Source: Klebsormidium nitens | Lineage: Eukaryota; Plantae; Klebsormidiophyceae | NCBI GenBank assembly: GCA_000708835.1 | Contig: DF237134.1 | Coordinates: 1-64,000 of the forward strand | Direction of reading: 5' to 3' | DNA: 64,000 nucleotides | In this document: positions 952 to 43,400 of the stretch, in pieces | Numbering within the stretch: the stretch's first letter is position 1 | Layout of the letters: the number at the start of each line of letters is the position of its first letter | The notes under the pieces: model-generated | Databases searched by the model: none | Told to the model about the DNA's origin: nothing | What the model saw: only the letters and a program-made list of their open reading frames with translations | Made by a program: the position numbers and the translations under genes

Positions 952-2276
952 GCTGAAAGTGCAGCGGAGGGGGCCTGGTCTCTGCAGATGGCTAGAGGAG
1001 TTTCCCTTTAGCCCCTACTGAAAATCTGCCTCATTGGGAATCATGCTGAGGCATGAATTTCTGCCAGGCCCACAGTGAGGACACCAGATGAGGTGCAGGA
1101 AGGTAAAGTGCCATGTGGTATGGTCTGCACGGTTGAAGGCAGTCTGCTTCTGGTCATGCTGGAGTCATGATCAGTCTGCATGCATGTTGTGACGAACCGG
1201 CATGGAACTTGCTTCGTTATGCAAGTCCGGTTTCAGTGGCACGAATGGGTGTCTGAAGTAGCCACTGTAACTGGACTTTTATCGTTTGATCCAAGCACAA
1301 ACCTCAAGCAAGGGTCGGAAAAGGTTGCGGCAAGTAGTTGTCCCTCAACGGAGCTGAATGATGGCGCCAGTGAAGGACTGAAGCGCGCTTTTCATGTAGC
1401 TTTCTGTTCCTTGTTTGCAGTCTGCCCATGAAGGAATTGCAACTGGTTGTTTGATCAGGGGCTATTACAACGAGCTCAACAGTCCCTAATCCAAGCATCA
1501 AGCAGTATACAGGCTCTAGAGCTCGAAACCTCCAGCTAAAAGCCCTTCTCGAGCAGCCAGTTTGGGCCCACCCAGTAACAAGACGGAAATGATGCAGAGA
1601 CAGTGACTGAAATGGATACATAGCAATAACCTGCCAGCGACATGCTGATAAGTCTATTCTGACTAAGTACAAGCTTCTGTTAGGGAGTTACGATCTCACG
1701 AGCTCACATTGACCCAAGTACAGAAATCAGGACAAACTTTCTCCAGAGAAACACGTTCTCAAAAGCTGCCACATATCGAGCTAGCCAGCTAAGCTCATGA
1801 AACAAGTGCAATGCGAACCGGCCTCGAGTCAAGTGTCCTGGTTGGAGCTAGATCCGAACAATTACGAACGGGCCTGCACAGTCTTGCAGGTTGTATCTTA
1901 CTTTTCGTTCTTACTTAAACATGAGAATCATGATTCAAGTATTGTTTAAAACTGTGAAGCTTTTGATTGATAAGACCACACATGTACAGTGATAGAAACG
2001 ACATGTCCAGATCTTAGTCATGATGCACCGTCGTGGCCATGTGCAACGCGCACCTTCCGTCAGTGTCACATAAATTATACGTGTGCCTGCAACATCTTAT
2101 AAGTAACAAGTATGAACGAGTCCATATTTCAGGCTTGTGCATATGTGCTAGCTCACATCACTCGCGTTGATGATCAAAAGATTGCCGCCTGCAGCCTGCC
2201 CGGCGGCCTAGCTTTGACAGTGAGACATGCGCTGCACAGCATGCATATCCAACCGACATGATCACGAACAAACATG

Positions 2277-2340
2277 TGTCGCGACAGACCATCTCGACGC
2301 TAGATCATGTCGGCACCACAGCATGTCACTTGCATCACTC
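2277..2340. repeat. Repeat Y, outer copy (64 bp)
   Basis: Identical to 2679-2742; begins with the palindrome TGTCGCGACA. Confidence 0.95.
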
Positions 2341-2343
2341 GCA

Positions 2344-2676
2344 GTGAATAATGACTGCGCCGCGTCCAGCGCGATCAAGGCACGTCAGAACGGTTCATGA
2401 GTGTGAATGAGACACGGAATTACAACCACGCCCTCATGGCATGGAGGGAAACTTCTTACTGGCCATCGTACAACTCTCAAGGGTTTACAATGAAGTCGCC
2501 CTTACAAAGCCTCAGATTGAACAGAAGAAAGAATGCCTAAGCTGCATTCTTCCTTCAAGTCACCAGTCACCTGAGCCTGCAGCACTACTCAACATCATCT
2601 ACACAATACTGAGACAATAATTACACCAATTATTGTCTCCCCATCTAGTTGCGACACAAATCGGACGCGCGTGACA
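2344..2676. repeat. Repeat X (LTR segment), 3' copy
   Basis: Matches 4878-5221; contains an 11-bp-stem hairpin GAGACAATAAT/ATTATTGTCTC at 2611-2639. Confidence 0.95.
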
Positions 2677-2678
2677 GC

Positions 2679-2742
2679 TGTCGCGACAGACCATCTCGAC
2701 GCTAGATCATGTCGGCACCACAGCATGTCACTTGCATCACTC
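2679..2742. repeat. Repeat Y, inner copy, immediately after the polypurine tract
   Basis: Identical to 2277-2340. On the minus strand AGGAGGGGAGAG (2751-2740) is followed directly by TG at 2739. Confidence 0.95.
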
Positions 2743-3010
2743 TCCCCTCCTGGGTCCGATCGTCGAACTAAAGTCGGACCCAAACACAGCACTACAAGTG
2801 ACGCCCACAACTGTCGCAACGTCGCCGTGCACAGCTGCGCCGCCACACTGCTGCGGTCCTGCCCCGTTCCAGCCGACCACGTGCCAGCCATCTACTCCCG
2901 TCGCCCCCGCGCTCCGAGTATCCCCCCACCGCACGCCAGGCATCCTGGCACCTTCCTAAGTAGCCACCGCACACTAGGCACCACAGGCCTTGCGGCCACC
3001 TCCCGGCCGC

Positions 3011-3904
3011 TTAGGCACGCGCCCCTCCCACCGGCAGCGCCAACGAGCTGAGCTCGTACTCCTGGTCGTCATACTCCGACCCTTCCTCTTCCGCGCCCTC
3101 ACCAGCGCCCGCGCCTTCAGCAGCAATTGCCTGCAGCTCCGCCTTCCAAGCCAGGAACTCCGCAAACTCTGCGGCGGAAACAATGCGCAGCCCCTCAGTG
3201 TCGACGGCCACCACCTTTGACACGGGCTGCCGCACCCTTCTCTCGACCACCGCCGGCGCCGCAAGTGCTGCCACAGGCCTACCACCTCCCCGGGCTCTGC
3301 TAGCCTCGGAAATCCTGGGCACTTGCTCACGCGCTATCTTCAGCCGCGCATTCATCGCTGTCACCCGCAGCGCCGCCTCATACGCCTCGTCTAGTGTATA
3401 TGCCCCTCCAGCCTGAGCCGTCCCCGCCATCGCCTGCAAGTTCGTTTGCTCAGCTAGCCGCCTGTCAAGGCATGTCACAAACTTGGTCACCAACTCCTGG
3501 TCCCCAAGCGGCTGGCCCAAATCCAGAGCCAAGCCCTGCAGCCTGAACAGCAGCGACGGCAGGTCCTCGCCTGACTCCCGCCTGAACTGCACCCACTCAT
3601 GAGCCTTCCCCTCCTTGTGGTCCTCAAAGTGCCGCCTCAGCGACGCTAAGAGCGCGCCCACCGGGTCTGACGTCCTGCAGTGGGCCTCGTACTCCCTCTC
3701 ATGAGCAAGCCTGGCAGGGTTATCCAGAAACTCTCCCAAGAAGATGCAATACCGCCCTGCAAACTCTGCCCCCTCCAGCGGGTTGCCCACATCCTTCTGC
3801 AGCTTCTTGAACCTCTGCTCCAAGCTGCCCTTCACCATCAGCTCAAATTGCTTGATGGTGAGCCCCTCGCCCTTCTTCCCGGAGAAACCTCTGTCTCCCG
3901 TCAT
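3011..3904 (-). CDS. Retrotransposon Gag-like (Ty3/gypsy-type capsid) protein
   Basis: 297-aa ORF inside the repeats with gag-like segments (FSGKKGE..., QFRRESGEDLPSLLFRLQGLALDL, ELVTKFVTCL, TLDEAYEAALRV). A Cys-rich in-frame continuation follows the TAA (2792-3010). Confidence 0.75.
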   Translation of the reverse strand: MTGDRGFSGKKGEGLTIKQFELMVKGSLEQRFKKLQKDVGNPLEGAEFAGRYCIFLGEFLDNPARLAHEREYEAHCRTSDPVGALLASLRRHFEDHKEGKAHEWVQFRRESGEDLPSLLFRLQGLALDLGQPLGDQELVTKFVTCLDRRLAEQTNLQAMAGTAQAGGAYTLDEAYEAALRVTAMNARLKIAREQVPRISEASRARGGGRPVAALAAPAVVERRVRQPVSKVVAVDTEGLRIVSAAEFAEFLAWKAELQAIAAEGAGAGEGAEEEGSEYDDQEYELSSLALPVGGARA

Positions 3905-4877
3905 TCACCCCCGCTGGCGCCATCTCCCCTTCGTCCGCCCACCAGCTGGTCTCAAACTCCCACGCGCCTGCGCCCGCGTCCGCCTCTGCTTCTGCTGCCA
4001 CAACACCCTCGGCACCCAGAGTTATTGCTGGCCCCTGCGAAACCGCTTGCACTACTGCCAGGTACCTTCTAGCCAGCTGAGCCCTAGTCTCAACTGGCAT
4101 GGAAGCGCACCCGACCCTTGGCGCCTTGCTGCGCCCACTTCACCCGGCTTCCCCTCCGCAGCGTTACCAGAGCCGCCAGCTGCCGCACCGTCCCTGCAGG
4201 CTGCCAGAACCTTGCCCCTCGTTCTGCTCCGCCGTGAGCCTGGCGCCTTGCCACCAGACTCGCTGCCGCCGCTTCAGGCGCTACTCCTCAGCGCCAGCCA
4301 GCTCCACACCAGCTCCCGGCCTGCTCAGCGCTCTGACGCTTCTGCGCGCCCCCGCTCACACTATCTGGCCCCTGCCACAGTGTCCTGACAGGGCCTGTTC
4401 ATAAACCTGGCGCCTTGCCTGCGCCCCGCTGTACCACCAGACTGTCTGCAGCGGCTCCTAGCGTTACCGCAGCCCTGAAGACCTGGTGCATACCAACACC
4501 GTCAAATCTCAACTACTTGCGCCTATGCACAGCGCCTGTTCGCCGCACACCTCGCGCACCGCTGCTCACAGCAGCTCACCGCAGCACCCAATGCACTGCC
4601 TCCCACAGTCCACTAACTGTGACAGGGGCTGCCTTGTGCAAACCCCTTCTCCCCTGCGCCTATGCTCAGCTAACTTTGCTGACCACCTCGCGCCCCGCTG
4701 CTCTCCGCTCAGCGGTCTCCCCAGCACTTGATGCTGCTCGCAGTCCGCAGACTGTAACAAGGGCTGCCTTGTGCAGGCCCTTTCACCACAGCGCTCGCAG
4801 CGCTACTCCTGGCACCTCAGTGCTATTCTCCTTCCAGGCCTGATTCATCAACTCATGCAACCGTGATTCTTTCTTCT

Positions 4878-5221
4878 GTGAATAATGACTGCGCCGCGTC
4901 CAGCGCGATCAAGGCACGTCAGAACGGTTCATGAGTGTGAATGAGACACGGAATTACAACCACGCCCTCATGGCATGGAGGGAAACTTCTTACTGGCCAT
5001 CGTACAACTCTCAAGGGTTTACAATGAAGTCGCCCTTACAAAGCCTCAGATTGAACAGAAGAAAGAATGCCTAAGCTGCATTCTTCCTTCAAGTCACCAG
5101 TCACCTGAGCCTGCAGCACTACTCAACATCATCTACACAATACTGAGACAATAATTACACCAATTATTGTCTCCCCATCTAGTTGCGACACAAATCGGAC
5201 GCGACACAATCGGGCGTGACA
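4878..5221. repeat. Repeat X (LTR segment), 5' copy
   Basis: 344 bp; equals 2344-2676 plus the insertion ACACAATCGGG. On the minus strand it starts TGTCACG and ends TATTCA before a PBS-like 13-mer. Confidence 0.95.
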
Positions 5222-5545
5222 CATGCTGAAATTATCTCAAAAAGGACTCAGAAGTTGGATTCTTGTAACCCGCGAATAGGTTTTGACAATCTGCTCAAAT
5301 CTAATGGGCAAAGATGGTAAGCGGCTGATTGCGGCCACTGTGGAATGCAGCTTGCAAAAGTTTGTGTAGCCTCTGACAACCGATGGCTCAACCGATGCCC
5401 ATGTAGGACAATTACAGTATGTCGCCATGGAGCGTGCAGTCCCACTTGGCTCGGAACAAGCATGCAAGAAAGACCTTCGGACCCATAAAGACCAATCGTG
5501 CAGAACCGGGCTGTATATAGTTTCGACTCAGTCGGCAGATATTCT

Positions 5546-8500
5546 TCAAACTTTTAACGGATGAACTGCCGCATCCATCCTCCTAAATGCTGTCCGTATC
5601 CTATCTGCCATCTGCTCGTCTTCGCACTCAAGCTCCTTGCTCTCGTAGTCGAACTTCGCTTGCACCCCGTCCATCTTGACCGTCAACACTTTCGCCTCCT
5701 CGTCTAGATCCACCGTCCCAAATAAGTCTCTCAACAACCTTCTTCTTAGCCTCAACTCGTCCCGTTCTGACACACTCCCCGTGCCAACTAGAGCGAGCCT
5801 CTTTTCGGACGCCCCAGCGTCCAGCTGGAGCACCAGCGCCACCACCGAGTCCGCGACCATGTCCGCAATCGGGTCGGACGCCCACTCCATCACAAGCAGC
5901 TCGTCCGACTCGTGCCTGACCGTCACCACCCCGTGCACACTTAGCGACTCGACCTCCGCCTTGTCAACTGTTACCACCCCCTCGTACAGCTGCTCTAACC
6001 GTTGCCGCAAGGAGAAGAAGGAGCCCCGGTAGGGGAGCGACTGCCGCTGCAAAACGCTCCCCGAGCTCAGCTGCGTATACGTGTGCAAGTCTGCCGGGTC
6101 CATCAACTGGTAAGTGAAGCCCTTTTTAACCAGGAGCCCGCCCACTTGGGTGCCCTCCCCCGGGGTCTCGGCCGCCAGACGGCCGACGGTCTTGGCGGTC
6201 TTCTCGCTTGTGAAGTGGAGCTCGACGGTTTGCGTGTTCTTGGGGGTCAGCACCTGGCAAGAAACGGGAGTTCGGAGCTTTTCTCGGAGCTACGCTTTGA
6301 GTTCACGAGGTGGTTGACACGATCTGCAAAGTTTGAGTAGCGCCCTCAGAGAAAATCCTGTGAAGCTAGGAAAGTCTCGCCCAGTTTGACACGTATGCGA
6401 CCATTTGAGTCTGCGAAGAAAACGATTGGAGATGAAGATGAAGCTAGCGATTGCGCCGCTTCCAGAACGAGGAGGACCGTCGGTTTCTGCACGTCGCAAA
6501 TCTAGCACGTCGTCTTTATGAGACCGCTCGGATGTTGCGAAGACAAGGGCGAGCGACACACCTCAACTGTTGGCAGCGTCGAAAGACACTGTTTTGGCAA
6601 AAGTCTTGGACAAAAGGATGCATTTGAGTACGAAGGCCTTCTGATCGAACCTTAGAAACAGGGGCAGCAATTATATGCCCCGGAAAGCGGTCAACATAAC
6701 ATGACGTTTGGGTTGAAAAAAAGGCCGAAATTGCGTCAACAGAAGCATCCTCGACCCAGAGCTTCGCAACCGGACATTAGCTGGATTGAGAAGCACCCGG
6801 CTGTTCAAATGGCGCCTGGTACGCTCCGTCAACAGCGGCTCAGTTTGCGAGCGGAAATCGAAGCCTCGTGGGCTCTCAACCAACGACTCGTCACGAAAGC
6901 GAAAAAATTCACGTGGATTCCTAGCAGCAGATAGCTCTCACGAAGCGCTTCTTATCCCTTTCCTCCTACGCACACACGACTTACCGACGCACCCCATCAA
7001 TCTGCACACCTCACCTTGATGTCCGTCCCCGCAAACACGGTGTTGAGCTTGCTCTTGAGCCGCCCCATCTCGTTGGCCTCCCCGTGCACCAGAATGATGT
7101 TGGGCGGCCGCAGCTCCGTCAGGAAGTCGCTGGTCTGCGTGTAGTCCGCGTGCGCGGAGAAGGAGATGTAGTGCACGCTCATGCGGAGCGGGACGGGGAG
7201 GCCGCTTTGGAGGACCACCTCCTTGGGCTCCTTCAGGATCGTGCTCGCGAGCGTGCCCTCCACGCTGTACCCGGGCACGATGCACGCGTTGCGCTTGTCC
7301 TAGAAATAAGCGAAGATTAAATCTGGTGAAGAAAAGCTACATGTGTTGCGCAGGAGAATGTTGGGGATGTTGATGGATCGGACGTGTGCTCGCCAGCGTG
7401 CCCTTCAAGCTGTACCCGGGCACGATGCACGCGTTGCGCTTGTTGTAGGGAGAGTGACCATTGTGAGCAGGAAAGGGCCCCTTTCACAAGTATGATCAAA
7501 ATCCAGGTGATCCAGCAGGAATATTAGTGAGGGTATTCTCCGCGCTGTTCCCGGATCGGCTACATGCGTTGCGCCTGTTGTGGGCGGGAAGGAGGAGCGG
7601 ATAAAATGGACAAATCTGTAACGGAGTAGAGAGGAGACGAGTGATTTGGGGTTATGATCAATCGTCGCGTGGACTCAACTTTACTTCGATGCTTTATCCT
7701 TTTGCTGAGGGATAAGAGGACGACAAGTGAAGGTTCAGAAATTTTCTGTACGTGCTCCGCGAAGAAAGACCGCGTGCTCTGAACAAAGGGCTGCGCAAGC
7801 AGTTAAATATGAGGACCACGCGCACGCTCGTATCCTGTACTTAACCTTCTTGACAACGCCTTCCTGAGAGGCAACAGGAAGATGAAGTCCACAGTATCCG
7901 CAAACCGCCAGTGGTCCAAGAGACCCTCAATCACAGTAAACCTTAGATATAAACGGTGGGTTTCGAGATTCAAACTGTACAGCAGCTCTTGAACGGAGAA
8001 AGAAGTAGATTGACACGTGGCATGCTCACCTGGCACCACATGTCAAACAGCTGGCGCGACATGCCGCTCTGCAGCATCCCGGGGCTGGCCATCACAACCG
8101 ACGGGCCCACGTCCTCGAACTCCCGGATACTCCGCAGATTCGATATGAACTTGAAATTGAACGGGTTGTCGATCTCGAACTGCCCCCGGATGCGATCATT
8201 CATCGAATTGATGTACGTCTGGTACACGAGCAGCGACTTCTGCGCGAGCGGCGACGCATAGTAAATGGGCACGTGCTGGATCTCGGGGTGCGCCGCCCAG
8301 TACTCCTCCATGATGAGCAGCAGCTCCTGCGCGCGCCCGAGCGCGAACGCGGGGATGAGCACGCGGCCGCCCTGCATGACCGTGCTCGCGATGATCTCCG
8401 TGAAGCTGCACGGAGAAATTAGAGTCGTCAGCATTGGGGGGATAGTTCGTAAATGGAGCTCTAAAGGAGTGGCTCGATTCCCCCTTCGAAGCGGCCATGA

Positions 8501-11500
8501 AGGACTCAACGGCAATGATTCCCGTTGGGTTGCCCACAACGAAAAGGCCCCACTGGTTCCGTTTGTAAGTGGATCGGGGAGCCCGACATATGCTCGAGTG
8601 TAACGCACCTTCGGACGTTACAGTAAGCTTACTGAATCAAAAACGAGAGGCACTACGTCGAACCGACTGAGCTGTTCAGATACAGCTAAATGACTAACGG
8701 TCGGTCTGCCGACGCTGAGCCCCCACTTGACGCATGCTTTCTGTCGTCCAGAACTCCTCGGAATCTGCAGACTTGAAACCTCAAATCTTGATTGCTCGAC
8801 GGTTCAGTCGTCCGGCCCGCACTCACCGGCGCTCGGTTACCGCGCGCGGCTGGTAAATTTGCAGGCCGTATGTAAAAAATACCAGTTCTCTCGAAACTCC
8901 GTTTCATCTCAAATGTATGATGATCCAAACATCCAAACTCACCGGCGCTCCCGCACCGCGCGCGGCTGGTGTATCTGCACGCCGTACGTCGACTCGATGA
9001 TGCAGACGTCCGGCGAGAAGGGCGGCATTTCCGCGGCGCGCAGGTGGCGGTCCTCCTCCCGGGAGTAGTCCCCGGTGTACAGCACGCGCACGCCCGCCAC
9101 GTCGACCATGAACATGGCCGCGCCCAGCACGTGGCCTGCGGTGTACGCCCAGAAGCGGATGCCGTCGACTTCGACCGTCTGGTGGTAGTCGATGACCTGC
9201 GAGAAAGAAATAAAGAAAGTGTGGGGTCAAATAACATGTTCATGGTGCCTGTCAATGACCGTAGAAAGCAAAATATTAGATTGGTGTCATGGTGGTAGTT
9301 GATGACTTCGCCTGTGGGAAAAGGTGAAAAGCACTGGGTCGAAAAAAGTGTTATACTGGTAGTCGTGACCTTGGAAGAGGAAACAGAACGTGCTGGGTTG
9401 AACAGTGTGTCAGAGTAGAGTTTAAAGAAAAGGTTTGCGAGTGGGGCTCGGCTCGGCTTCTGCAGGGGAGGCATTGGCGTTTTTGCTGTTCTTTACGGAA
9501 GGGAGGAAAGGAACGAATCGTACGAAAAGCACGGCTGTCGTGCCTCGTTTTGCTTCAAGCCCAGTCATATCTCGAGCTTTGGACCAGCCCCTAGAAGCAA
9601 AGCTGGTGCTTCACTTTCTAAACGTAAGGAGATCCGTGGCTTTCCCCAGAGGCGCGAACGTCAGATACACTGTGCATTTCAACGTGCATCCGAGGTCGTC
9701 CGCGCCCCACTGATATCCGAAACCACCAAAACCGTTTGCGCACAATGACGAATGGGACAATGTCGGTTTCAAGAGTGAAAAAGTTACCGAACTGCGGGGT
9801 CTCCTGCAAACATCTCAAGCAATAGCATGACAACGAAACACGCGCTAAAATACAACAGAAGCACGCCCCATTCGACGCTGGTCCCGTTGCGCTCTCTCCG
9901 TCCTCATTGTTTGATGGCTTCTGAGCGAGAACGCTATGGTAGCAAACAAAGCGACACACACCGCAAAATAAGCATCAAAGATGTCCGCCCAAAGCGAGAA
10001 AGAAGAAAAGCAGAATACATCCCTATACCACTTCAATCCTAAGCATGGAGCTTTCTTGTGGGGTCCTACGTACTCCCCCCGTGTCGAAATTGAGAAGAGA
10101 TAGACAAGATCAGAGATGTCTACCTCAATCTTGGCCATGGATCGCTCCAGGTCGTGCTCATCGTAGAGCATGTCCTCGACGGCCACCTTGCTGACGCGCA
10201 CAAAGTCGAGCAGCAGCAGCTTGTAAATCGCCTTGGTCGCATGCGTCATGTACACCTTGCCCTTGAACGCAGTCTGGGACAAGATAGGCAAGAGGGCAGC
10301 AGTGTCAATGGGCTGGAAGAGAAACGCCGATGCTTAAACAAGTCCGCAGGTTCTCGTCCCAAACTTCGAATCCCTATTATGCTGCTCAGTCTTCGATACG
10401 GTCATGTGGACGTTGAACGGTTGCGCTTATGAGACCCGCCCGTTTTCTCTCGAATTCAGGAATAGCCATGCAAAGAAAAAGGAGCAAGACACGTCCTCTC
10501 TGGCCCCGTTTCCCAGCAGGCCTAACGTAGTAGGCTTCTTTGATGATCGCTATTCTGACAACGTCACTGCGTCAGCAGTAGATGCCGAGAAGTACACATA
10601 GGGCCCATGCAACAGGCCCTGATAAGTACTTTCAAGAACGATACGTTTTCAGCCTATCGAGGCACTTACCTTCTCTGTGACATACGGAAGCGACGCAGCA
10701 TGGTCCAAATGAAAGCTGCAGAGGAGTAGTATAACTGGTTGAGTCAGGGGGCAACTGAAAGGCGGAGGGCCAAGAAGTTGGTTAACAGAAAGTCAGAAAG
10801 TCCTACTTGCAGCACATACTTTGTACAGCCTCTCTGACTCATCGAAGCGACTTGCCAATAACCCATATGCCAAGCATCTGTACCACACTCCTCTTCTGTA
10901 AAGCTCGTTCTCAGATCGACTGAAATGAGACAATGACGTCGATCACTACAAGCTTGTCTTATCCAACCAACAATCTCAGCCCAAATCATGCTCGTTGCTC
11001 TGTTTCTTTTGGAAACCTCTTGGAGACTCTAACACTCACTGCGTAACAAGCAGGATGTCCACGGTGCTGAGGTCGATCTCATCGAAGAAGGGCAGGGCCG
11101 CCAGGCCCGAGTAGGCGGGGTGGATTCCGCAATCAAACTGCAGGGCAAAAGGACAGGGTGGTCCATGTGAGCAAGAGGACCGCAGGAAGCAGAAAAGATA
11201 CAGATGCCTGGCTCCAATTGAGGGTAATAAGCATGGTTCGACTTTGCTGTTTACCATTCTGGCCTGTTTAGCCATGTTTTTCAGACTGATTGGAACCGGC
11301 GGAGATGTGCAACTGTGCCTTTACTGTGCATAAGCAGGGTCCCAACAGCCTTGTCCTCAAGGTTGATGAGAGGTCAAAGATTCAATGCCGTCCGCGAGCG
11401 AGCCTCTCGTGGCACTCCTTTGGAAGCCTCACTGATGTCACTGACAAAGAGAAGCCCCGCCGGGGGTGATACTGCAGCGCCTCCACCCCTTGGAAAGGAT

Positions 11501-13095: not shown

Positions 13096-16000
13096 AACGC
13101 CAGGTGTGCCCATAAAGCCGCCTGATGCAGCTTACCGGTTGGAAGCCTGGCTGGAAAGAGCTGACGGTATGTCCCGCTGCTCAGTAGAATCTCTTTCCCA
13201 AGCTGCTCCAGTAAAACGCTTGAAAGTGATGTACTCTTGTTGCCTCAAGTGGTGCGCCTGTGCAGGACACTAGCTTGCTGATGTCAAGTGCATCAGGGAA
13301 GCGAGGAGCGTCTTGTGTATAAGATTGGTTCAATGAAGAAAGTCAGGAACACCAGATGAATCACTTTTCTTGAGAGGCACCCAGTTATGCCCCCGGAGTC
13401 CATTGCACAAGGCCCCTCGTTTTGCCCCTTCAGGTCTTTGCCCTACTCAGAAGGTCAGTAATCCGGCCACCTGCTTGTGGTAAAGTGCAGTATGCTGAAA
13501 AGAATGTGCAAGCCGAGAGCAATAATTTTTAATTGTGCGAAGTGGGTTTTGTATACTCGTTTCTTTCTAATATGCTGCAGAACCCCGCCTGGAGTTGGTG
13601 GGGCCTGGAGAGTACAATGAGCTTCTCCAAGCCGCGAGCCGGAATTGGGCCGCATTAGAAAAGGGCATTAAAGAGGCGCAGCAGGGGTCTGACAATCTGC
13701 TTCGAGTAAGGCCGTCTGAAGGTGTTTGTCAGGAGTAAAGCGGGCTATGCTCGTTGGATTGTCATGGTTGAGGAGTTTTGTGATTAGTGATTGTCAAGCT
13801 CCTCTTCTTCTTTGCATGCTACTCTTCTTGGGGTGAATTGTTCGCAGACCCAAATAACATTCAAAGCCGCAGACTCGGTTTCGTCAACACAGGCTGCATC
13901 TCTCTAACTCTTTTCTACAGTCCGTGATCGAACTTTTCCAGATTTTCCTCCCTGTTCATGTGTCTTTCTGCGCACGTTGTAGCCCCTTCTTGCCCCTTCT
14001 TTTTGTATCTTTTATGGCACCCCCACTCTTCGCCCCACTCTATGATCATCCCTTCCCTTACAAGCATCAGCGCCTTTGGAACTCTCAGGACGAACAGACG
14101 CTCCAGGCGCTGGCGCGAGACCGCTACTTCCTCACCTTGACTGAGGCAAACGTGGAGACCCTACTGGCTCTACTGCACAGACTGACAGCTGGCGGTGCTT
14201 GTGGGGATAGCGGTTCAAACGCAGTTGTGTCTGGTGCTCGGATTCTCGCCGCTTGGGTGCGGCGGGTGTCGGTGCAAGGTGAGGGATTTGCACAAGCGTG
14301 CTGGGATGCCCTTCAACAGCACGAATCATTCCTACGTTCACTCTCTGCATTGTGTGTGTACTTGTTTGCACTGCATCCCTTCAACTCTTGTTGTGACTTC
14401 CTTCTCTTGTCCTGTTTCTTTGGGCACTGACTTTAAACGATTGTCCTTCAACGGTCCCAGCCCCTGGCAGCGGTCTACTCTTTCTCGACTGGTCTGTCTC
14501 CAATTCGTTTGCCAAAGGCTGCTATCTTGACTCAAGGACGCCCAGAGTTGCTCGCATCAGAGGTGTGGGGGCGATTCTAGCTTCTCGACGAGCCGCCATT
14601 GAAAATCGTCCCCATTCGCTGCAGCCGCACCGACGTGGGCGTCCAGAAGAGTCCCGGCCATCATTGATACTGCCTGCGACGCTCTCACCTCTAGTTCTTT
14701 AGGGGGCGCATCTGGGAGTCTGATCTATCTCTTGGGCGCTGGAGCCGCAGGTAAGCACGCGTAACAAATAACTCTTTTTGGATACGTGGGCCGTTGATCA
14801 TTGAGCTGAGGAAGATTAATATTCGAAACCAAAAGAGATGGTCAGATTAGTGCAGAAGACGGCGCCAAGTTTGGCCTGGCTGTCGCTACTCGCATGCGTG
14901 GTTTAGTAGCAGTCTGTTGTTTTGGGTCGATCGAGAGAGTCCTGTCAGCAGCTGAGCTCAAATCAATCGTATCGCACTTCTACCCAAGCTCGTTGGAGTA
15001 AGTGCTCTGCATTTTTAGAATCTCATGTTGTGTTTAAACAAGTGTCGAACAGCGAAAGTTTGTCCCTACTTCCGAAGATAGTGACTTGATTCTCGCTCCG
15101 GTTACTTTGGTGGGCAGCCCCTCAATGCTCGCCAACTGGACACTCTCGATGTCGGGAAGTGGTGACACAGGCGCTGCATCAGCGGAGGTCTGCAGTGAGG
15201 TAAGCCTCTGCTGAGCTCCTGCGCCCGCCCACTTATCTGTAGTCGTTTCGTGCAACACATTTTGCACTTCCCTTTCGAAGCTGCCCAGAGTTGCCATTAC
15301 CACGAAGTGCTCGACCCCGCCCTGCGTTCGGGTCCAGTGCAGTCAACTGCTTGTGCGATTCGCTGCAATCACATGGCATGGCCACCTCCGTCGAATTTGG
15401 CCCTTATACGTCCGGAGGACCGCAGATGGCCCCTCCCCCTTCCTTAGATGATACGAAATATGAGCCGGAGGAATGCTCGCTCGTTCATTCATCCGTGCTC
15501 CGAAGCACAAACTCGAACCAGGGTTTTGAAGGAAGGCTTTCCGTCCAACAGCTGTTGTTCAACTGTCTTCTAGCTTCTATATTAGAAATTTGAAGCTTGG
15601 TATACGAGCTCTTACCCCCTCCTCTCCTTTTTCCCAGTGGGCCCACTCAATTCCCCGACGCTCTCGTCGGCGCCGCATACCTCATCACCGGCGGCTCTGG
15701 CGTCCACGGGGCGCATCTGACCGCCCTCCTCACCAGCCTCCTCCACCTTTGGGCCCCACCAACCGGTTCCTTTTTCTCGGTCACTTCCATCGCTCGCCCC
15801 TCCCCCCACTCCCCGCACCAAAAGGCTGACCCCCCGAGCAGCAGTTCTGGCTCCCACGAGCTCCTTCCGCTCAGTCCGCCGGAATCCGCCGGAGCCCCCC
15901 TCATCCAGGCGCTTGCGCTCTCCCGACTGCTAGAGTACCTCGCGCTGCTAAGTGCGCGCGCGCTCTCCCAGGACTTCGGCACGCGCTCCCTGGCGCTCGC

Positions 16001-18780
16001 AGACGCAAAAGCGGTCCAAATCAGCCTCAGTCTATCGGGGGATCCCTCGGTAAGCGTATTGGCGCTCGCCGGCTTCAACCGGGGGTTGGGCGGCCGTCGG
16101 GGGGACGGCTTTCGCGGCGCGGCCGAGGACTGGGTCCGGTTGGTCGAGCAACAGGAAGGGCTACTCATTTCAGCAGCTGAGGCGGTACTTGCAGAAGTAG
16201 GCAGAACCTCAAAAGTTGGCGCTCTCGGTCAGGCTTACGTGCACAAGGGACTCGCGCACCGGGTCCAGTGCGCGGCGCTCGCATGCTCGCGTCTGGACTC
16301 CATACCCGGGACGCCCCTTGGAGGAAACGCCTCGATCTTGCTTTGCCTCAGCTCGGCCCTGTTCAGAGACCTCTTGAGCCTCGGCCGGCTGCATTCGGCC
16401 GCAGCTCCGTTCATTTTGTCGGATCGGAATCCAAACGGAAGGCCGGCAGGTTCCGGACGGAACTCCGGCCTTCAGTTGCACGAGGAGTTGAATCGGGCGT
16501 TTGCGGAGGTGAGAGAACGGGTGGAAGGGGACGCGTTCAAGAACGTGGGTTTGCTCGCGAGGGCTCTCTGCGACCACTGCAAAGCAGCAGACGATGCGGG
16601 GCGGCGACTGGTTCTGGGGGAGGTGGTGCGTTTTGCACTTGGCCTTGAAAAAGGGCACCGAAACGCTGCGTTGAGTACGGAGGCAAATGGGGCTGCGGAG
16701 AGGGAAGCCGCCGAGGCCGCCACGAGAAAGGTCCTCGACGCCTGCTTCCTGACGGTGACCGTCTGCTGTGAAGCGGTCCTGGGAGAGGCGCCTGGTTCCG
16801 TTCCGCCCGGGTCCGTTCCGGCCGTGCGGCCGGCGGAAGCGGATCCGAAGGTGGTCTGCGAGATACTGGAGGCCCTGTCCTGCGTGGAGTTTTGCCGGGT
16901 GCCGTACGCGGGGTATGGCCAGCTGGTGACTCGGGCAGTCACGCTGGCCGCTAAGAGCAGAAACGGGGCAGAAGGGTTGGCGGCAAACATGCCGAAGTAC
17001 GAGGACACAGTCGCTCTCGCACTGGTCCAGTCGCCAATCCTTTCTGGAGGCGAGTCGAGGGGTTTGCGGGGATCAGAGCCTGGCTACTCCGGAGCAGTAG
17101 CAACGGACAGAGAGGGTCGTGGTCTTGGCCAGGCAGACATTGTTGAGGGAAACGACTCGAGGGGAGAGATGGTGGAAAGCACACCCAGCACGTCCGGCCG
17201 GGGGGCCGCAACCGGTCACCACGTTAACCCGACAGGACTCCTTTCCCCCGAGGGCCAGTCTCCTACCTTTTGGGCACGTGACGCGGTTCGTGCCGCCCGC
17301 GTCCACTTCATGCTGCGCGTCTTGGGGCCGTGCGTCGAGAAGATCGGGGACGAGCCGTTTGCGCATGCGGTCCTGCCGATGCTCCTGCTGTATCTGCTTC
17401 ACCCCTCGGCGCCAGTCTCGCGCTCCGCCCACGCGCTCTTTGCTGCCTTTCTGGACAGCCGGGAGGCGTTCCGCCGAGAGTTCGAAGCGGAACGGAACGG
17501 CGGAACGGCACGGACCGGCGGAACGGAATGGAGCTCCCCAGACCTCGACTCCGCGTGGCAGCCCCCTCCAAAGACCAGCATCTTGCAGCGGCTGAATCTT
17601 CTGTCCCCTCAACACAACGCAAAGAGCGACCCCCCCAGGGATGTATCCGTTGCGGAACGGGCGGCGCTGTTCTACGTGCAGCGGTCGCTGGGGGGGTTCC
17701 CGGGGCTGACGTCATTCGAGGCGTTCACGGCGGGGGTGGCGGCAGTAGTGCGCCACGTGCCCCCCGGGAGCCCGGCGATCGTGCTGTCGTTGCGGCGGAT
17801 CGCGGCGGCTGCCAAGGATCTGTTCGCGCGGGGGGTGCCGTACGTGCCGCCGGAGGGGGAGGCAAACGGAGAAAAAGGAAAGGCGCCGCAAGAAGGGAGT
17901 CGGGGGGGGCAGCTGACGCGGCTACTGGTGCACCTGATCCCCATTGTAGATATCCAGGTGGGAATACGGTCCGCTGTGAAGTCCGACGGTAAAGTTGTTT
18001 GCTAGCGGTTCAAGGATAGAATCTTAATTACGCTTTGCCGCTGCTTCATTGGGGGCCGCGTCTGCTCCACGAGAGAAGTGCCGACGTGGATTTTCCGGGA
18101 TCTGTGCAACCTGACGTATTGATGTTGTTTGAATCTGCTTTTGGCAGCCTGCAACCGGCATTTCTGGCAGGTTTTTGAGTGGAGTGGATCATGAGATTCC
18201 CAATGTAATAGTGGTCTGCAGTGCAGAGCTCAGCCTTTTCGTCGAATGCCGACTCTGTCATACTAGGTGCCACTTCCAGATTCAGCGTACGGGGATTTAC
18301 GCAAGCTCCTATTCTACATTTTTGGCGCCCAGCTCGAGTCACCTTCGTCCTTACGCTCTCCCCGCTTATCGTAAAAGACAGCCACGTCCACGTTTTTTCC
18401 TGAACTTGCCGAAGTGACTGGTAGCTAGATTCTGACACCTACTTCTCGCCCTCGCCCCGCAGGTCCTGACCGGTCTGCTCCACGAGACGGAGGCCGTGGT
18501 GCTCTTCATCTCCGACCAGTCCGCCCAGCAAGCCGCGCTCGCGGAGCTGTACGAAGTCCTCGCCGCGAACGAGGACTACACGCGCAAGGCGCACTGCACC
18601 GTATGGTACCAGCAGCTCGCGGCGAAGTGCGTCGCGCAGTTTCGGGCGAGAGTGAGAGAGGGGAAGGCGGGGGTGGCGAGGATAAAGTCGAAGGACGGGG
18701 CGGGGGGGCGGTCTTGGCCCCGGACGTGGGGGCTCTCAAGACCGAGGCAGAGCGTAGGGGACGAAGACGCGATTTCATAA
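13096..18780 (+). CDS. Conserved plant protein of unknown function, homologue of Arabidopsis At1g73970 ('obscurin-like', helical repeat); first exon unresolved
   Basis: Phase-compatible exons at 13096-13166, ~13581-13707, ~14064-14279, ~14627-14750, then a large exon ~15638-17957 (join phase unresolved) and a last exon 18463-18780. Motifs YRLEAWL, LQALARDRYFLTL, ILAAWVRR, RAARVHFML, LVHLIPIVDIQV, NEDYTRKAHCTVWYQQL resemble At1g73970 as I recall it. Confidence 0.7.
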
Positions 18781-40400: not shown

Positions 40401-43400
40401 CTGACTGCCAGCACACGCAAGTGCTCGTTTCAGCCCGTAAGCACACGAAGCCGTATCGAGTACGTAAGCACGACTTCAAACATCTCGAACTTTCTCAAGT
40501 CTTACTTCCGACCAATCGAGCAGGGACTGAAATGAGGAAGACGTTGCCAGCACAAGCGTCCTGCAAAAGGGCTCAAACCCCTCACCTGCCTCCTTGGGCT
40601 TCTCTTCTTTGGCCGCCGGCGCCTCCTCCGTTGCTGACGTCACCTGGTCCACCACCCCCGTCACCGCAGCTACCCCTGCGTCCGCCGCCTCCTTCACCTG
40701 CTCCGCCAGCGAGGGCGCGTCCTCCTTGGCCGCCTCGACAGCTGGCGCCGCCTCCTTGGTCTCCTCCGCCGCCGGCGCAACGGCATCCTTCACGCTCTCT
40801 ATAACTTCCTCCACCTTCTCAACCACGGGCTCGGCCGCCTCTTTCACGCTGTCAACCACGTTCTCAACTGCCTCGGCAACCGGTCCCACGACATCGCCGA
40901 TCCCCCCAGTCTGGATCGCCCCAAGCTGGTCCCCAACGTTGTCTGACGCCCCGGTGACGGTCTCCTTCGCCTCCTCTACGGCCGGCTCGACTTTCTCAGC
41001 CACGGGCTCTACCGCCTCGGTAACGGTCTCCTTGGCGTTTTCTACCAAGGGCTCCGCTTTCTCGCCCACGGTATCCGCAGCATTGGTAACAGTCTCCTTA
41101 ACCTCTTCCACTATGGGCTCGACCTTCTCAGCCACAGGCTCGGCAACCTCCTCAACTTTCTCGATCACGGGCTCGGCAACCTCCTTGACCTTCTCGATCA
41201 CGGGCTCCGCCACTTCCTCGACTTTCTCAGCTACCGGCTCTACAACTTCCTCAACCTTCTCGATCACGGGTTCAGCGGCTTCCTTGACTTTCTCGGCAAC
41301 CGGCTCTACGACTTCCTCGACCTTCTCGATCACGGGCTCCGCCGCTTCCTCGACTTTCTCGGCAACGGGCTCCACAACTTCCTCGACCTTCTCGATCACG
41401 GGTTCAGCCGCTTCCTTGACCTTTTCGGCTGCCGGCTCTACGACCTCCTCGACTTTCTCGGCGACCGGCTCTACGACTTCCTCGACCTTCTCCGCAACCG
41501 GCTCGGCCACTTCTTCGGCCTTCTCGACCACGGGCTTTGCAACATCCGCGACTTCGTCAGCAATGGGCTCGACGCCCTCGGTCACGGCTTGTGCGGCGTC
41601 TTTGGCGTCATCAACGACATCCTCGACGGTCTCCTGGACGGCTTCAGCGGCGCCCGCGTTGGATGAGTCGTCGGCATCGGCCTCCTCGGGCTTCTCGGCG
41701 GCCGGGGCGGGAGCGTCGTCAACCTTCTTGCCTGAGAAAAGGCCAGCCTCTGCAAATGAGGAAGAGAGTGGTCAGGTTGGATAATAAGTGAGGGGAAATA
41801 GGAACGGAAAATGTGAGCTGCTCCCACGGAGGCTGTCAATCGAATCGCTACAAACGAAACCGCAGGGTCGTGAAGGAGGGGGTGAATTCTGACGACCTAG
41901 CTGAAACAAGCTTCCACAGAAGTGCAGACTTACAGAAGTGCAGACTTCCAGAGGAACGTCGTCCTTCTGTCCGCACTAATGTACACAACACTGGCACGCA
42001 GCAAAACATGTGCAAAAAGGACAAGTCCTTACTGCGACGACCTCAGAGCACAATCAATGTCCTCGAAACGTTTCACAAAGTTAGTGCACAGCCCTACGCT
42101 TGAGAAGATCGACAATATAACAACGTGCTGACTGTCAAACAACCTAAATGTGCTTAACAGCCACAAACAACAGATGATCACACTACTCTGCTTTTGATAC
42201 CACTCACTCTGGATCTCCTGGGTCTCCGTCTTGATCTCATCGCTAGCGGCAGCCACAGGCTCGGGCTTCTTCGTCTTCGCGAGCTCCTCGGCACCTGGGA
42301 GCTTGTCCAAAACCAGGTTCGACTTCTTGAAGGCGGCCTCGAAGGGGTTCGTGATGCCGTCTGTGCCGAACTCAGCCCCCTGGTTGAGCTTCACGTTGAT
42401 GTCATCCGTCTGCAGGATACACGGGCCAAAGTCAATCGCGTGTATTTGTCAAAAGCCAAGTGTTCCGATCAAGAGGCCCGATATTTGTGATCTGACAAAG
42501 CCGTACTCATTTCGAATACTTCAGAAGTATGCAACCGACCATGTGCACCAAGGTAATGCTCCAAAACAGTGCCGTCACAAGCAGAGGCGCAGAGTGCTTC
42601 CCTTTCTGTCACTTCGAGTTTAGCAGGTTGAGACTGGGAAGTAAGTGCTCACATCGACTCTCTCCTTGGTAGTCAGGCTGATGCGGTCTTTCTGCAACAA
42701 CAAAAGGATGGGTGGATGTCAGGAATACCGTTATCCCCTTCCGCGAGTCAGGAGAAAGTGCACGACGAATCATCGGCAGGAGGGACACAGCAACGTGGAT
42801 AGAGAACTGGCCCCCTCCCAGCAGAGCTCCAAAGCAGCTGAGACGCCAAAGAACAAACCGAGCTTACCGTGACAGACAGGACGGTGACGTTCACTTTTTG
42901 ACCCATTTCGAGGTGCTCAGCAACCTCTACCCGCTCGCTTCCTGCAAAATCCAACAGCTCCAGTGAATCTCAAGGGGCTTCCCATACGAATCTGTCAAAT
43001 TGAGGACTAGGGGGAACAATTTTCTGCCCCTACAGCTTGCCGTGCAGATTGGGAAGCTTTGCTAGCACAGAAAAGATTCACCCCCCTGGACAAACCTTCC
43101 TCTAACTGGCTGATATGAAGCTGCATTACTTCTTGTAAGCAGCTCTTTAAAAAAGGCAGTTAATGGGGACCGTCGGAAAACAGGACGCTTACCCTCTCCA
43201 ATCTCGCTAGCATGGAGCAGTCCCTCGACCCCATCCTTCAGCTCCAAGAAGGCCCCGAAGGGGGCGATGCTGGTCACAGTGCCCTCAAACTTCTGCAGAG
43301 GGAAAGGATGGAAGCGACCTTTAAAATGGTAGTGCAGAATGTCAAGTGACAAAAGTCAAAAACAAAGAGAGAAGCTACAACCACTGCAATACATTTGCCT

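Follow-up and report, generated by a model that had tools for sequence, protein, structure and literature searches.

LTR retrotransposons and retroviruses integrate a linear cDNA by both of its LTR tips, and circles are by-products of this process. To our knowledge, circular or joined cDNA is regarded as a dead end in all of the LTR elements and retroviruses that have been studied.

The described elements closest to the one reported here are the KnitGypsy-Dnmt3 elements of Klebsormidium nitens, which are Ty3/Gypsy elements with a Dnmt3 methylase (de Mendoza et al. 2018, PMC5890265). According to the legend of Fig. 4c in that paper, these elements have the repeat structure of a DIRS retrotransposon and the domains of Gypsy. 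So the DIRS-like repeats of this clade were already known, from a figure legend of 2018. The paper gives no ends, target-site duplication (TSD), primer-binding site (PBS), polypurine tract (PPT), or mechanism, and its supplements are without element sequences or coordinates. This legend aside, a literature search of incomplete coverage turned up no account of split repeats in an element with a DDE integrase.

Other systems share single traits with our element. DIRS-order elements (PAT, Ngaro, TOC1, and VIPER) have the repeat order A1-internal-B1-A2-B2, in which the B1/A2 junction consists of the joined termini, and they encode a tyrosine recombinase. Plant TR-GAG elements have terminal repeats around a lone gag ORF, lack pol, and are presumed to be mobilised in trans. 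Self-priming of reverse transcription is established in Tf1/Sushi elements and has been predicted for the Tcn1 and TAR lineages of plants (PMC6317226); in Tf1/Sushi, the PBS lies right after U5, is complementary to an LTR site at the 5' end of the RNA, and is not of the tRNA type. Finally, HIV-1 integrase cuts the internal LTR-LTR palindrome at the junction of 2-LTR circles (PMC1905944), and such circles can be reused in retroviruses (PMC4372172).

The element lies on the minus strand of a 64-kb stretch of K. nitens DNA ("the window") and is the only copy within it. It is 2.9 kb long, and gag is its sole coding content, without pol. An earlier reading of the locus from its letters (the sequence-only reading) had described the minus-strand order X-gag-Y-X-Y, and both this order and its coordinates hold to the base by alignment and direct reading (Table 1). 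In full, the order is X(343 bp)-PBS-leader-gag-PPT-Y(61)-GC-X(332)-CTGCGAG-Y(61). Two equal direct LTRs at the termini are absent; instead, the repeats are circularly permuted (X ... Y-GC-X-CTGCGAG-Y), which gives the A1-internal-B1-A2-B2 order of DIRS elements.

Table 1. Features of the element, listed in its own 5' to 3' direction with coordinates in the window.
Feature	Coordinates	Strand	Remarks
Whole element	2277..5221	-	
Target-site duplication CATG, upstream copy	5222..5225	-	Direct reading; borders set by the X1/X2 alignment
X1	4879..5221	-	343 bp; left integration end; begins TGTCACG, finishes TATTCA; holds part of U3, the predicted R, and U5 of the reverse-transcription LTR
Predicted self-primer (start of transcript and R), ATTCTTTCTTCTGT	5055..5068	-	14-nt perfect complement of the PBS
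Primer-binding site of self-priming (Tf1-like) type (predicted)	4866..4879	-	Begins at the last base of X1
Long non-coding leader	4101..4865	-	Degenerate units of ~135 bp (repeat families D3, D6, D11)
gag N-terminal part (MPVETRAQLA...)	3843..4100	-	Frame differs from the rest of gag; switch near 3890
Main gag ORF (KFL_001850020)	3011..3904	-	297 aa; 100% match to P0001
Polypurine tract AGGAGGGGAGAG	2740..2751	-	12-nt purine run; abuts Y1 on its upstream side
Y1	2679..2739	-	61 bp; U3 start of the reverse-transcription LTR (TGATGC...); closes ...CGCGACA
Spacer GC	2677..2678	-	Completes the perfect 10-bp palindrome GACAGCTGTC at 2682-2673
Internal palindrome GACA-GC-TGTC	2673..2682	.	Y1/X2 border; direct reading
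X2	2345..2676	-	332 bp; alignment to X1
X2-Y2 junction CTGCGAG	2338..2344	-	Between U5 end (TATTCA) and U3 start (TGATGC)
Y2	2277..2337	-	61 bp; right integration end ...CGCGACA
Target-site duplication CATG, downstream copy	2273..2276	-	Direct reading

The two copies of X align with 0 mismatches and a single 11-bp indel. This indel directly follows the initial TGTCACG, the first of three heptamers of the form TGTCRCR that X1 contains at a spacing of 15–16 bp. The two copies of Y are fully identical, and their match runs 3 nt further upstream, into GAG. With zero substitutions between its repeats, the element is a young copy.

The termini are TGTCACG...CGCGACA, that is, TG..CA with an inverted repeat that matches at six of seven positions. 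CATG flanks both sides, as had been noticed, and the bases outside it differ, so the target duplication is exactly 4 bp. (With the borders fixed, a matching 4-bp flank has a chance of 1/256.) The empty site before insertion is predicted to have been AACATGCTG. The flanking CATG differs from the spacer GC at the internal Y/X border. There, the palindrome seen in the sequence-only reading is perfect over 10 bp, and each of its halves exactly matches one integrated end of the element. This palindrome is the presumed integrase (att) site. At the other internal border, CTGCGAG consists of the first base of the PBS (C) and the last bases of the PPT (GAG), as had been claimed, with a middle TGC that matches neither. 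This junction is presumably an end-joining scar.

The priming sites place the LTR differently from the integrated ends. On the upstream side, a 14-nt stretch whose first nucleotide is the final base of X1 has a perfect complement within X1, and 0 of 5000 shuffles of X reach an equal match. This self-primer complement is new here, and it strengthens what had been labeled only as PBS-like. Across the whole element, the best duplex partners of the predicted PBS are the two X copies of the self-primer site, with a duplex energy of -18.8 kcal/mol. The self-primer site is also the 3' arm of a local hairpin (5090-5078 / 5070-5058). Pairing of primer and PBS appears in the centroid fold alone; the minimum-free-energy fold pairs the 5' end elsewhere, and the z-score is just -1.5. 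No tRNA-type PBS (TGG) is present at the PBS position, and we found neither tRNA genes in the window nor any Rfam match. On the downstream side, purine runs of at least 12 nt occur just four times in the sense strand of the element. Because the self-complementary PBS adjoins X1 and the PPT adjoins Y1, the predicted reverse-transcription LTR is Y-GC-X. The ends that priming would define (TGATGCA / TGAATAA) have only three bases in common and are unlike the palindrome half-sites. The earlier claim that the LTR defined by priming differs from the integration ends at the Y/X palindrome is supported: integration used the palindrome halves inside the LTR, not the priming-defined LTR tips. We also considered X-CTGCGAG-Y as the true LTR, in which case the 5' LTR would be missing Y. 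We rejected this reading: two exact rearrangements would be required, and the PPT and the self-complementary PBS would have to land at the new borders by coincidence.

The main gag ORF has a capsid-like core, is without both of the CCHC knuckles seen in its relatives, and terminates at the point where the autonomous polyproteins run on. The N-terminal part is in another frame: tblastn with P0002 and P0005 matched frame 2 at 4100-3759 and frame 3 from 3931 onward. At the protein level, the leader showed no resemblance to the N-terminal regions of the polyproteins in the relatives. No Pfam domains were found in the gag ORF, and a PDB profile search with gag matched zinc knuckles alone, which the KFL_001850020 copy lacks. 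The AlphaFold model of the ORF is all-helical, with low confidence (pLDDT 45). By hhalign, gag aligns to the corresponding region in a chromovirus polyprotein (probability 96%). In Klebsormidium subtile, too, the knuckle-less gag lineage is transcribed and its ORF is intact.

To place the element, we relied on gag. K. nitens polyproteins that match it include P0186, whose gag part is 81% identical over 203 amino acids, and P0206, whose N-terminus is 60% identical (E = 3e-81). P0206 is a single polyprotein of 2087 amino acids with zf-CCHC, RVT_1, RT_RNaseH, Integrase_H2C2, and rve. The C-terminus of P0186 matches P0077 at 77% identity across a region that is protease-like and contains Dnmt motif I; in P0077, a matching gag C-terminus precedes the protease-like region and the methylase start. 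This region of P0077 overlaps P0202, which contains DNA_methylase, RVT_1, RT_RNaseH, Integrase_H2C2, and rve. Pfam scans and precomputed Pfam lists showed no Phage_integrase (tyrosine recombinase) in these relatives, and neither the ORF list nor tblastn of the relatives showed a tyrosine recombinase inside the element. When ten relatives were compared to the element by tblastn, gag alone was matched (no protease, methylase, RT, RNase H, or integrase). Scans with gag profiles of JGI metagenome contigs, IMG/VR, and GTDB genomes gave no gag relative. With P0202 as a pol query, metagenome contigs gave 37 loci that are 24–46% identical Gypsy elements and are uninformative on the Klebsormidium clade; the longer of these loci have ordinary or no terminal repeats, as judged by self-BLAST.

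Because its gag relatives carry rve and none has a tyrosine recombinase, we class the element, on sequence grounds, as a non-autonomous, gag-only (TR-GAG-like) Ty3/Gypsy derivative and not as a DIRS element, with the link to integrase made through homologous proteins of other copies instead of an element that shares the X and Y repeats. The sequence-only reading had proposed to look for an autonomous partner with RT and either type of recombination enzyme. Gag-homologous polyproteins with RT and rve exist, and a tyrosine recombinase was found in none of them. Along with a gag homologous to that of Gypsy polyproteins ordered PR-RT-RNaseH-IN, the TG..CA ends with a 4-bp duplication, the predicted PBS after U5, and the PPT before U3 are as in Ty3/Gypsy elements. 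A Dnmt3-type methylase is missing from the element and is present in polyproteins of its gag family (P0077 and P0202). By these comparisons the element is a derivative of the KnitGypsy-Dnmt3 clade, not a full member of it: a copy without methylase or pol.

The element differs from each of the systems above. It shares its host and a homologous gag with KnitGypsy-Dnmt3, but protease, methylase, RT, RNase H, and integrase are all missing from this copy, and neither CCHC knuckle remains in its gag. Like plant TR-GAG, it has terminal repeats around a lone gag ORF, no pol, and presumed mobilisation in trans, but plant TR-GAG elements have two ordinary LTRs, whereas the element has permuted LTRs and a gag without nucleocapsid knuckles. 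Its predicted PBS resembles that of Tf1/Sushi in its place after U5 and its complementarity to the LTR, with the transcription start being a prediction. However, Tf1 integrates the ends of its linear cDNA, whereas the integrated ends of the element differ from its priming-defined ends. In retroviral 2-LTR circles, a DDE integrase cuts a CA..TG palindrome to give integration-competent ends, which is what we propose for the element; but in retroviruses the palindrome is the U5/U3 junction, made by joining, and the route is a side route. In the element, each LTR contains the palindrome and passes it on through the RNA, the U5/U3 junction made by joining is uncut, and the route would be obligatory.

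We propose that this gag-only Gypsy derivative is probably mobilised in trans by the RT and DDE integrase of the KnitGypsy-Dnmt3 clade, and that an end-joined cDNA would be reopened at the internal palindrome. This explanation is built on one copy of the gag-only family. Transcription would start at about 5068 in X1 and end in X2 (both sites are predicted; TGTAA motifs lie near the predicted transcript end, at 5040 and 5023 in the X1 copy). The 5' end of the RNA would fold onto the PBS and self-prime, as in Tf1, and standard strand transfers would give a linear cDNA with Y-GC-X LTRs. The ends of this cDNA would then be joined, leaving the scar CTGCGAG, in a form like a 2-LTR circle. Next, integrase would cut both strands after CA at the GACA-GC-TGTC palindrome of the upstream LTR. 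Since these cuts are 2 bp apart, the two resulting ends would be recessed at CA-3'OH and carry 2-nt 5' overhangs, which is the form of processed retroviral ends, and these would be inserted with a 4-bp staggered target cut. A symmetric circle would have two palindromes. Only X-int-Y-X-Y retains a downstream R and would therefore be the sole product able to parent new copies; apart from the inability of the other product to replicate, the model leaves the choice of cut unexplained.

The same genomic structure would be expected from a linear head-to-tail product of reverse transcription. Reverse transcriptase might, for instance, switch template between the end of U5 and the start of U3 and so add a third partial LTR, and integrase would cut the two outer palindromes. 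The triple repeat on the 3' side would then be accounted for without selection, and non-templated nucleotides added at the switch could make up the extra bases of the junction. Nevertheless, we consider this route unlikely: the middle palindrome would have to escape cutting, we have no direct evidence for it, and the literature we searched held no precedent.

Alternatively, the family might normally be arranged as Y-GC-X ... Y-GC-X, and a dead-end 2-LTR circle might have been opened and inserted once. There is a single copy in the window, and the irregular extra bases at the junction resemble those at retroviral circle junctions. However, the break is exactly in a perfect 10-bp CA/GC/TG palindrome, with inverted TG..CA ends and a clean 4-bp TSD. 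Such a non-random break points to an integrase that recognises these half-sites, which the priming-defined ends do not resemble. Also, the related autonomous clade was published with DIRS-like repeats (PMC5890265). Such an accident seems to us quite improbable. Of the two alternatives in the sequence-only reading, a family-wide permuted layout is favoured over a one-off event, because of the gag relatives with rve, the published repeats of the clade, and the built-in palindrome at the break point.

As had been noted from the sequence, the element mixes a DIRS-like A-ORF-B-A-B layout with TG..CA ends, a PPT, and a 4-bp TSD of the DDE type. Split direct repeats in this order are the textbook mark of tyrosine-recombinase elements (PMC8969392). 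A derivative of the DIRS/PAT/Ngaro type would recombine with its target as a closed circle, at the B/A junction, and CATG, which is itself palindromic, would be the shared crossover core. But CATG is unlike the internal GC spacer and hence is no copy of the element's own core. Furthermore, DIRS elements make no TSD (PMC8969392), the ends are TG..CA with an inverted repeat, the gag is 60–81% identical to polyproteins with Gypsy-type RT_RNaseH and rve, and Phage_integrase is in none of the relatives. Overall, this origin is very improbable. Least credible is an assembly artefact, a mis-join among repeats that really belong to an ordinary LTR element. The sequence does come from a draft assembly, and 100%-identical repeats are hard to assemble, but a mis-join would not create a 4-bp duplication on unique flanks or inverted TG..CA ends, and would not put the PBS and PPT exactly at the inner borders. 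The same layout was also published for the related clade (PMC5890265).

The tips that reverse transcription gives this element, as set by the PPT and the predicted self-priming PBS, differ from those found at its integrated ends, even though the enzyme family is that of ordinary DDE integrases. The copy is a natural minimal test substrate (young, at 2.9 kb, with clear borders, TSD, PBS, and PPT), and proteins would be needed in trans only. More tentatively, the whole DDE-integrase Gypsy clade of Klebsormidium, together with the gag-only element as its parasite, may replicate obligatorily via end-joined cDNA, similar to a 2-LTR circle, that integrase reopens at a palindromic att site within each LTR. 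If the permuted layout is the rule in this clade, then end joining followed by cutting of an internal palindrome would be a distinct step in replication, and split direct repeats alone would be insufficient to annotate an element as DIRS. If so, circular or joined cDNA would be the normal substrate for integration in the clade, and DIRS-like split repeats could arise without a tyrosine recombinase.

We read the region 2100-5400 on the minus strand with repeat searches and pairwise alignments. The sequence-only reading had mapped a retroelement with split direct repeats, X and Y, at 2277-5221, and its coordinates proved exact (see table). The two copies of X show no substitutions and differ by one 11-bp indel, which lies immediately past the first terminal heptamer, within a short 15-16-bp tandem repeat. 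Between Y1 and X2, a GC spacer makes a perfect 10-bp palindrome, GACAGCTGTC (2682-2673), while X2 is joined to Y2 by CTGCGAG. The integrated ends (TGTCACG...CGCGACA) are of the TG..CA type and are inverted at 6 of 7 positions. CATG flanks the element on both sides, and because the next bases outward differ, this target site duplication (TSD) is exactly 4 bp. Repeat searches found no further copies of X, Y, or gag within the 64-kb window.

Repeats and predicted priming sites of the element
Feature	Position	Strand	Remarks
X1	5221-4879	minus	343 bp; repeat search and pairwise alignment
Predicted PBS	4879-4866	minus	14 nt, from the last base of X1
PPT	2751-2740	minus	12-nt purine run adjoining Y1
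Y1	2739-2679	minus	identical to Y2
X2	2676-2345	minus	332 bp; repeat search and pairwise alignment
Y2	2337-2277	minus	identical to Y1

At the left end, the terminal heptamer occurs three times with 15-16-bp spacing (TGTCACG, TGTCGCG, and TGTCGCA; 5221-5184, minus strand). X2 has only two heptamers (2676-2650) because of the 11-bp indel, and the inverted reading of the right end gives TGTCGCG. The repeated heptamers could be extra integrase-binding sites or merely a slippage-prone tandem repeat. The U3 part of X also contains a 29-nt hairpin palindrome with 12-bp perfect arms and a 5-nt loop (5173-5145 and 2639-2611).

As for the neighborhood, a CPSF73-like gene (5546-9474, minus, ending at 5546; Beta-Casp and CPSF73-100_C domains) lies upstream on the same strand; about 325 bp separate its stop codon from the element, which may sit inside the 3' UTR of the gene. 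A SAM-methyltransferase-like ORF (442-951, plus) is convergent. Farther away, a 369-aa ORF with amphipathic repeats (40476-41585, minus) matches the Apolipoprotein A1/A4/E, YtxH, and phasin models and may be a putative LEA-like (stress protein) gene. An 802-aa ORF (15597-18005, plus) has no Pfam match, and this stretch is 64.6% G+C versus about 52% for the window.

We found no tRNA-type PBS in the element, and the window contains no tRNA gene or Rfam match. The 14 nt of the predicted PBS are instead the perfect complement of 5068-5055 inside X, which was reached in none of 5,000 shuffles of X (duplex energy -18.8 kcal/mol). No other stretch of the element pairs with the PBS as well as the two X copies of this self-primer site do. 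When the transcript was modelled from 5070, the centroid fold paired its 5' end with the PBS, but the minimum-energy fold did not, and the z-score was only -1.5. The complementarity would suit self-priming in the manner of Tf1/Sushi, a mode that has been predicted for two plant lineages, Tcn1 and TAR, as well (PMC6317226). Judged by the self-primer position, transcription would begin at about 5068, and this start and the TGTAA motifs at 5040 and 5023 suggest that R-U5 lies within X. With R-U5 so placed, the reverse-transcription LTR would be Y-GC-X (TGATGC...TATTCA, 395 bp). This is the LTR of Y plus X proposed earlier, and it is supported by the PPT at Y1 (only four such purine runs occur in the sense strand) and the self-complementary PBS at X1. 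At 5090-5058, two 13-nt arms form a local hairpin with 12 of 13 positions paired. The predicted self-primer overlaps its 3' arm, and its 5' arm resembles the PBS, so the PBS and the 5' arm may be rivals for pairing with one strand.

The 297-aa gag ORF (3904-3011, minus) matches Klebsormidium nitens KFL_001850020 at every residue and gives no Pfam hit; its AlphaFold model is of low confidence. The first ~70 gag codons are out of frame with the rest (ORF 4100-3843, frame change near 3890). Between the PBS and gag, a leader of ~770 nt (4866-4100) contains degenerate tandem units of ~135 bp (72-79% identity) and has no protein similarity to the N-terminal parts of gag relatives. A word search identified at least 44 gag relatives, mostly from Klebsormidium. 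Full-length relatives start with MPVETRAQLA and have two CCHC knuckles; in an alignment of gag relatives (A1), the knuckle segment is absent from the element and from two other proteins. One knuckle-less relative is a complete ORF, with several Klebsormidium subtile transcript isoforms, and is 90% identical to the element's gag. P0002 and P0254, from the K. subtile transcriptome EP00243, show that knuckle-less gag is transcribed with an intact ORF (363-364 aa, 90% identical to the element's). Because this relative is intact and transcribed, the knuckle-less gag-only lineage predates the element copy and is expressed. Transcription in a second species suggests that the gag-only parasite is maintained and more than just a decayed copy.

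An autonomous partner with reverse transcriptase and either integrase or tyrosine recombinase had been proposed as a check. A profile search over all representatives, followed by stepwise comparison along longer matches, found gag-related polyproteins with an rve integrase, and no relative examined has a Phage_integrase domain. P0206 (KFL_001690230, 2,087 aa) is the most direct link from gag to integrase: its gag is 60% identical to the element's (E = 3e-81), and the same polyprotein contains a CCHC knuckle, RVT_1, RT_RNaseH, Integrase_H2C2, and rve. Another relative, P0186 (KFL_007970030), is 81% identical to the element's gag across 203 aa and 77% identical to the protease/methylase region of P0077, in which a gag C-terminus, a protease-like stretch, and C5 methylase motif I are joined. 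P0077 in turn overlaps a protein with DNA_methylase, RVT_1, RT_RNaseH, Integrase_H2C2, and rve domains, P0202 (KFL_009030040). Profile-profile comparison matched the gag core, with 96% probability, to Retrotrans_gag in a chromovirus polyprotein. Comparing ten relatives to the element by tblastn found nothing beyond gag. Because the relatives carry rve and none carries Phage_integrase, and the element has gag only, it is very probably a non-autonomous, gag-only derivative of a DDE-integrase Gypsy clade. Going by these sequences, the parent clade is the one published as KnitGypsy-Dnmt3 (PMC5890265). In the legend of Fig. 4c, that paper assigns the clade a DIRS-type repeat structure together with Gypsy domains; neither a mechanism nor the element ends or TSD are described there, and no sequences are included in the supplements. 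Gag-profile scans of JGI metagenome contigs, IMG/VR, and GTDB genomes found no gag relative, and metagenome loci found by a pol query were rejected as too distant to be informative.

How might the permuted layout have arisen? An RNA of the form R-U5-PBS-leader-gag-PPT-Y-GC-Xa-R would yield [Y-GC-X]-internal-[Y-GC-X] after strand transfers of the usual kind. Joining the ends of this product and opening it at the palindrome in its upstream LTR would produce the genomic copy. Joining would create X-CTGCGAG-Y; in this junction, C is the first base of the PBS and GAG the last bases of the PPT, while TGC matches neither. If both strands of GACA-GC-TGTC were cut after CA, the cuts would lie 2 bp apart, and each end would have a recessed CA-3'OH and a 2-nt 5' overhang, as a retroviral end does after 3' processing. 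Inserting such ends with a 4-bp stagger would then put TG..CA directly against CATG with no GC at the ends, as observed. HIV-1 integrase cuts a palindromic 2-LTR junction in vitro (PMC1905944), and one report argues that integration can draw on 2-LTR circles (PMC4372172). The intermediate may instead be a linear head-to-tail reverse transcriptase product. Inferring from one copy, we consider this join-then-cut route a little likelier to be right than wrong.

A one-off accidental break is disfavoured: an accidental break is not expected to hit the perfect CA|GC|TG palindrome or to yield integrase-type ends and a TSD, and the priming-defined tips are unlike the integrated tips. An assembly mis-join is also disfavoured, as it would not generate a TSD on unique flanks. 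A tyrosine-recombinase (DIRS) route is contradicted by the DDE integrase of the relatives and by a TSD that is present and differs (CATG) from the internal spacer (GC). The break in the palindrome, the integrase-type ends, the TSD, the PBS and PPT, and rve in gag relatives support the original view of a permuted-LTR element. Of its two alternatives, we favour a family-wide circular intermediate over a one-off event, with data from one copy of the element. Among the possible products of joining and cutting, only X-int-Y-X-Y (int, internal region) would keep the downstream R. X-int-Y and X-Y-X-int-Y would be replication-incompetent, and their loss of replication makes a prediction that can be counted.
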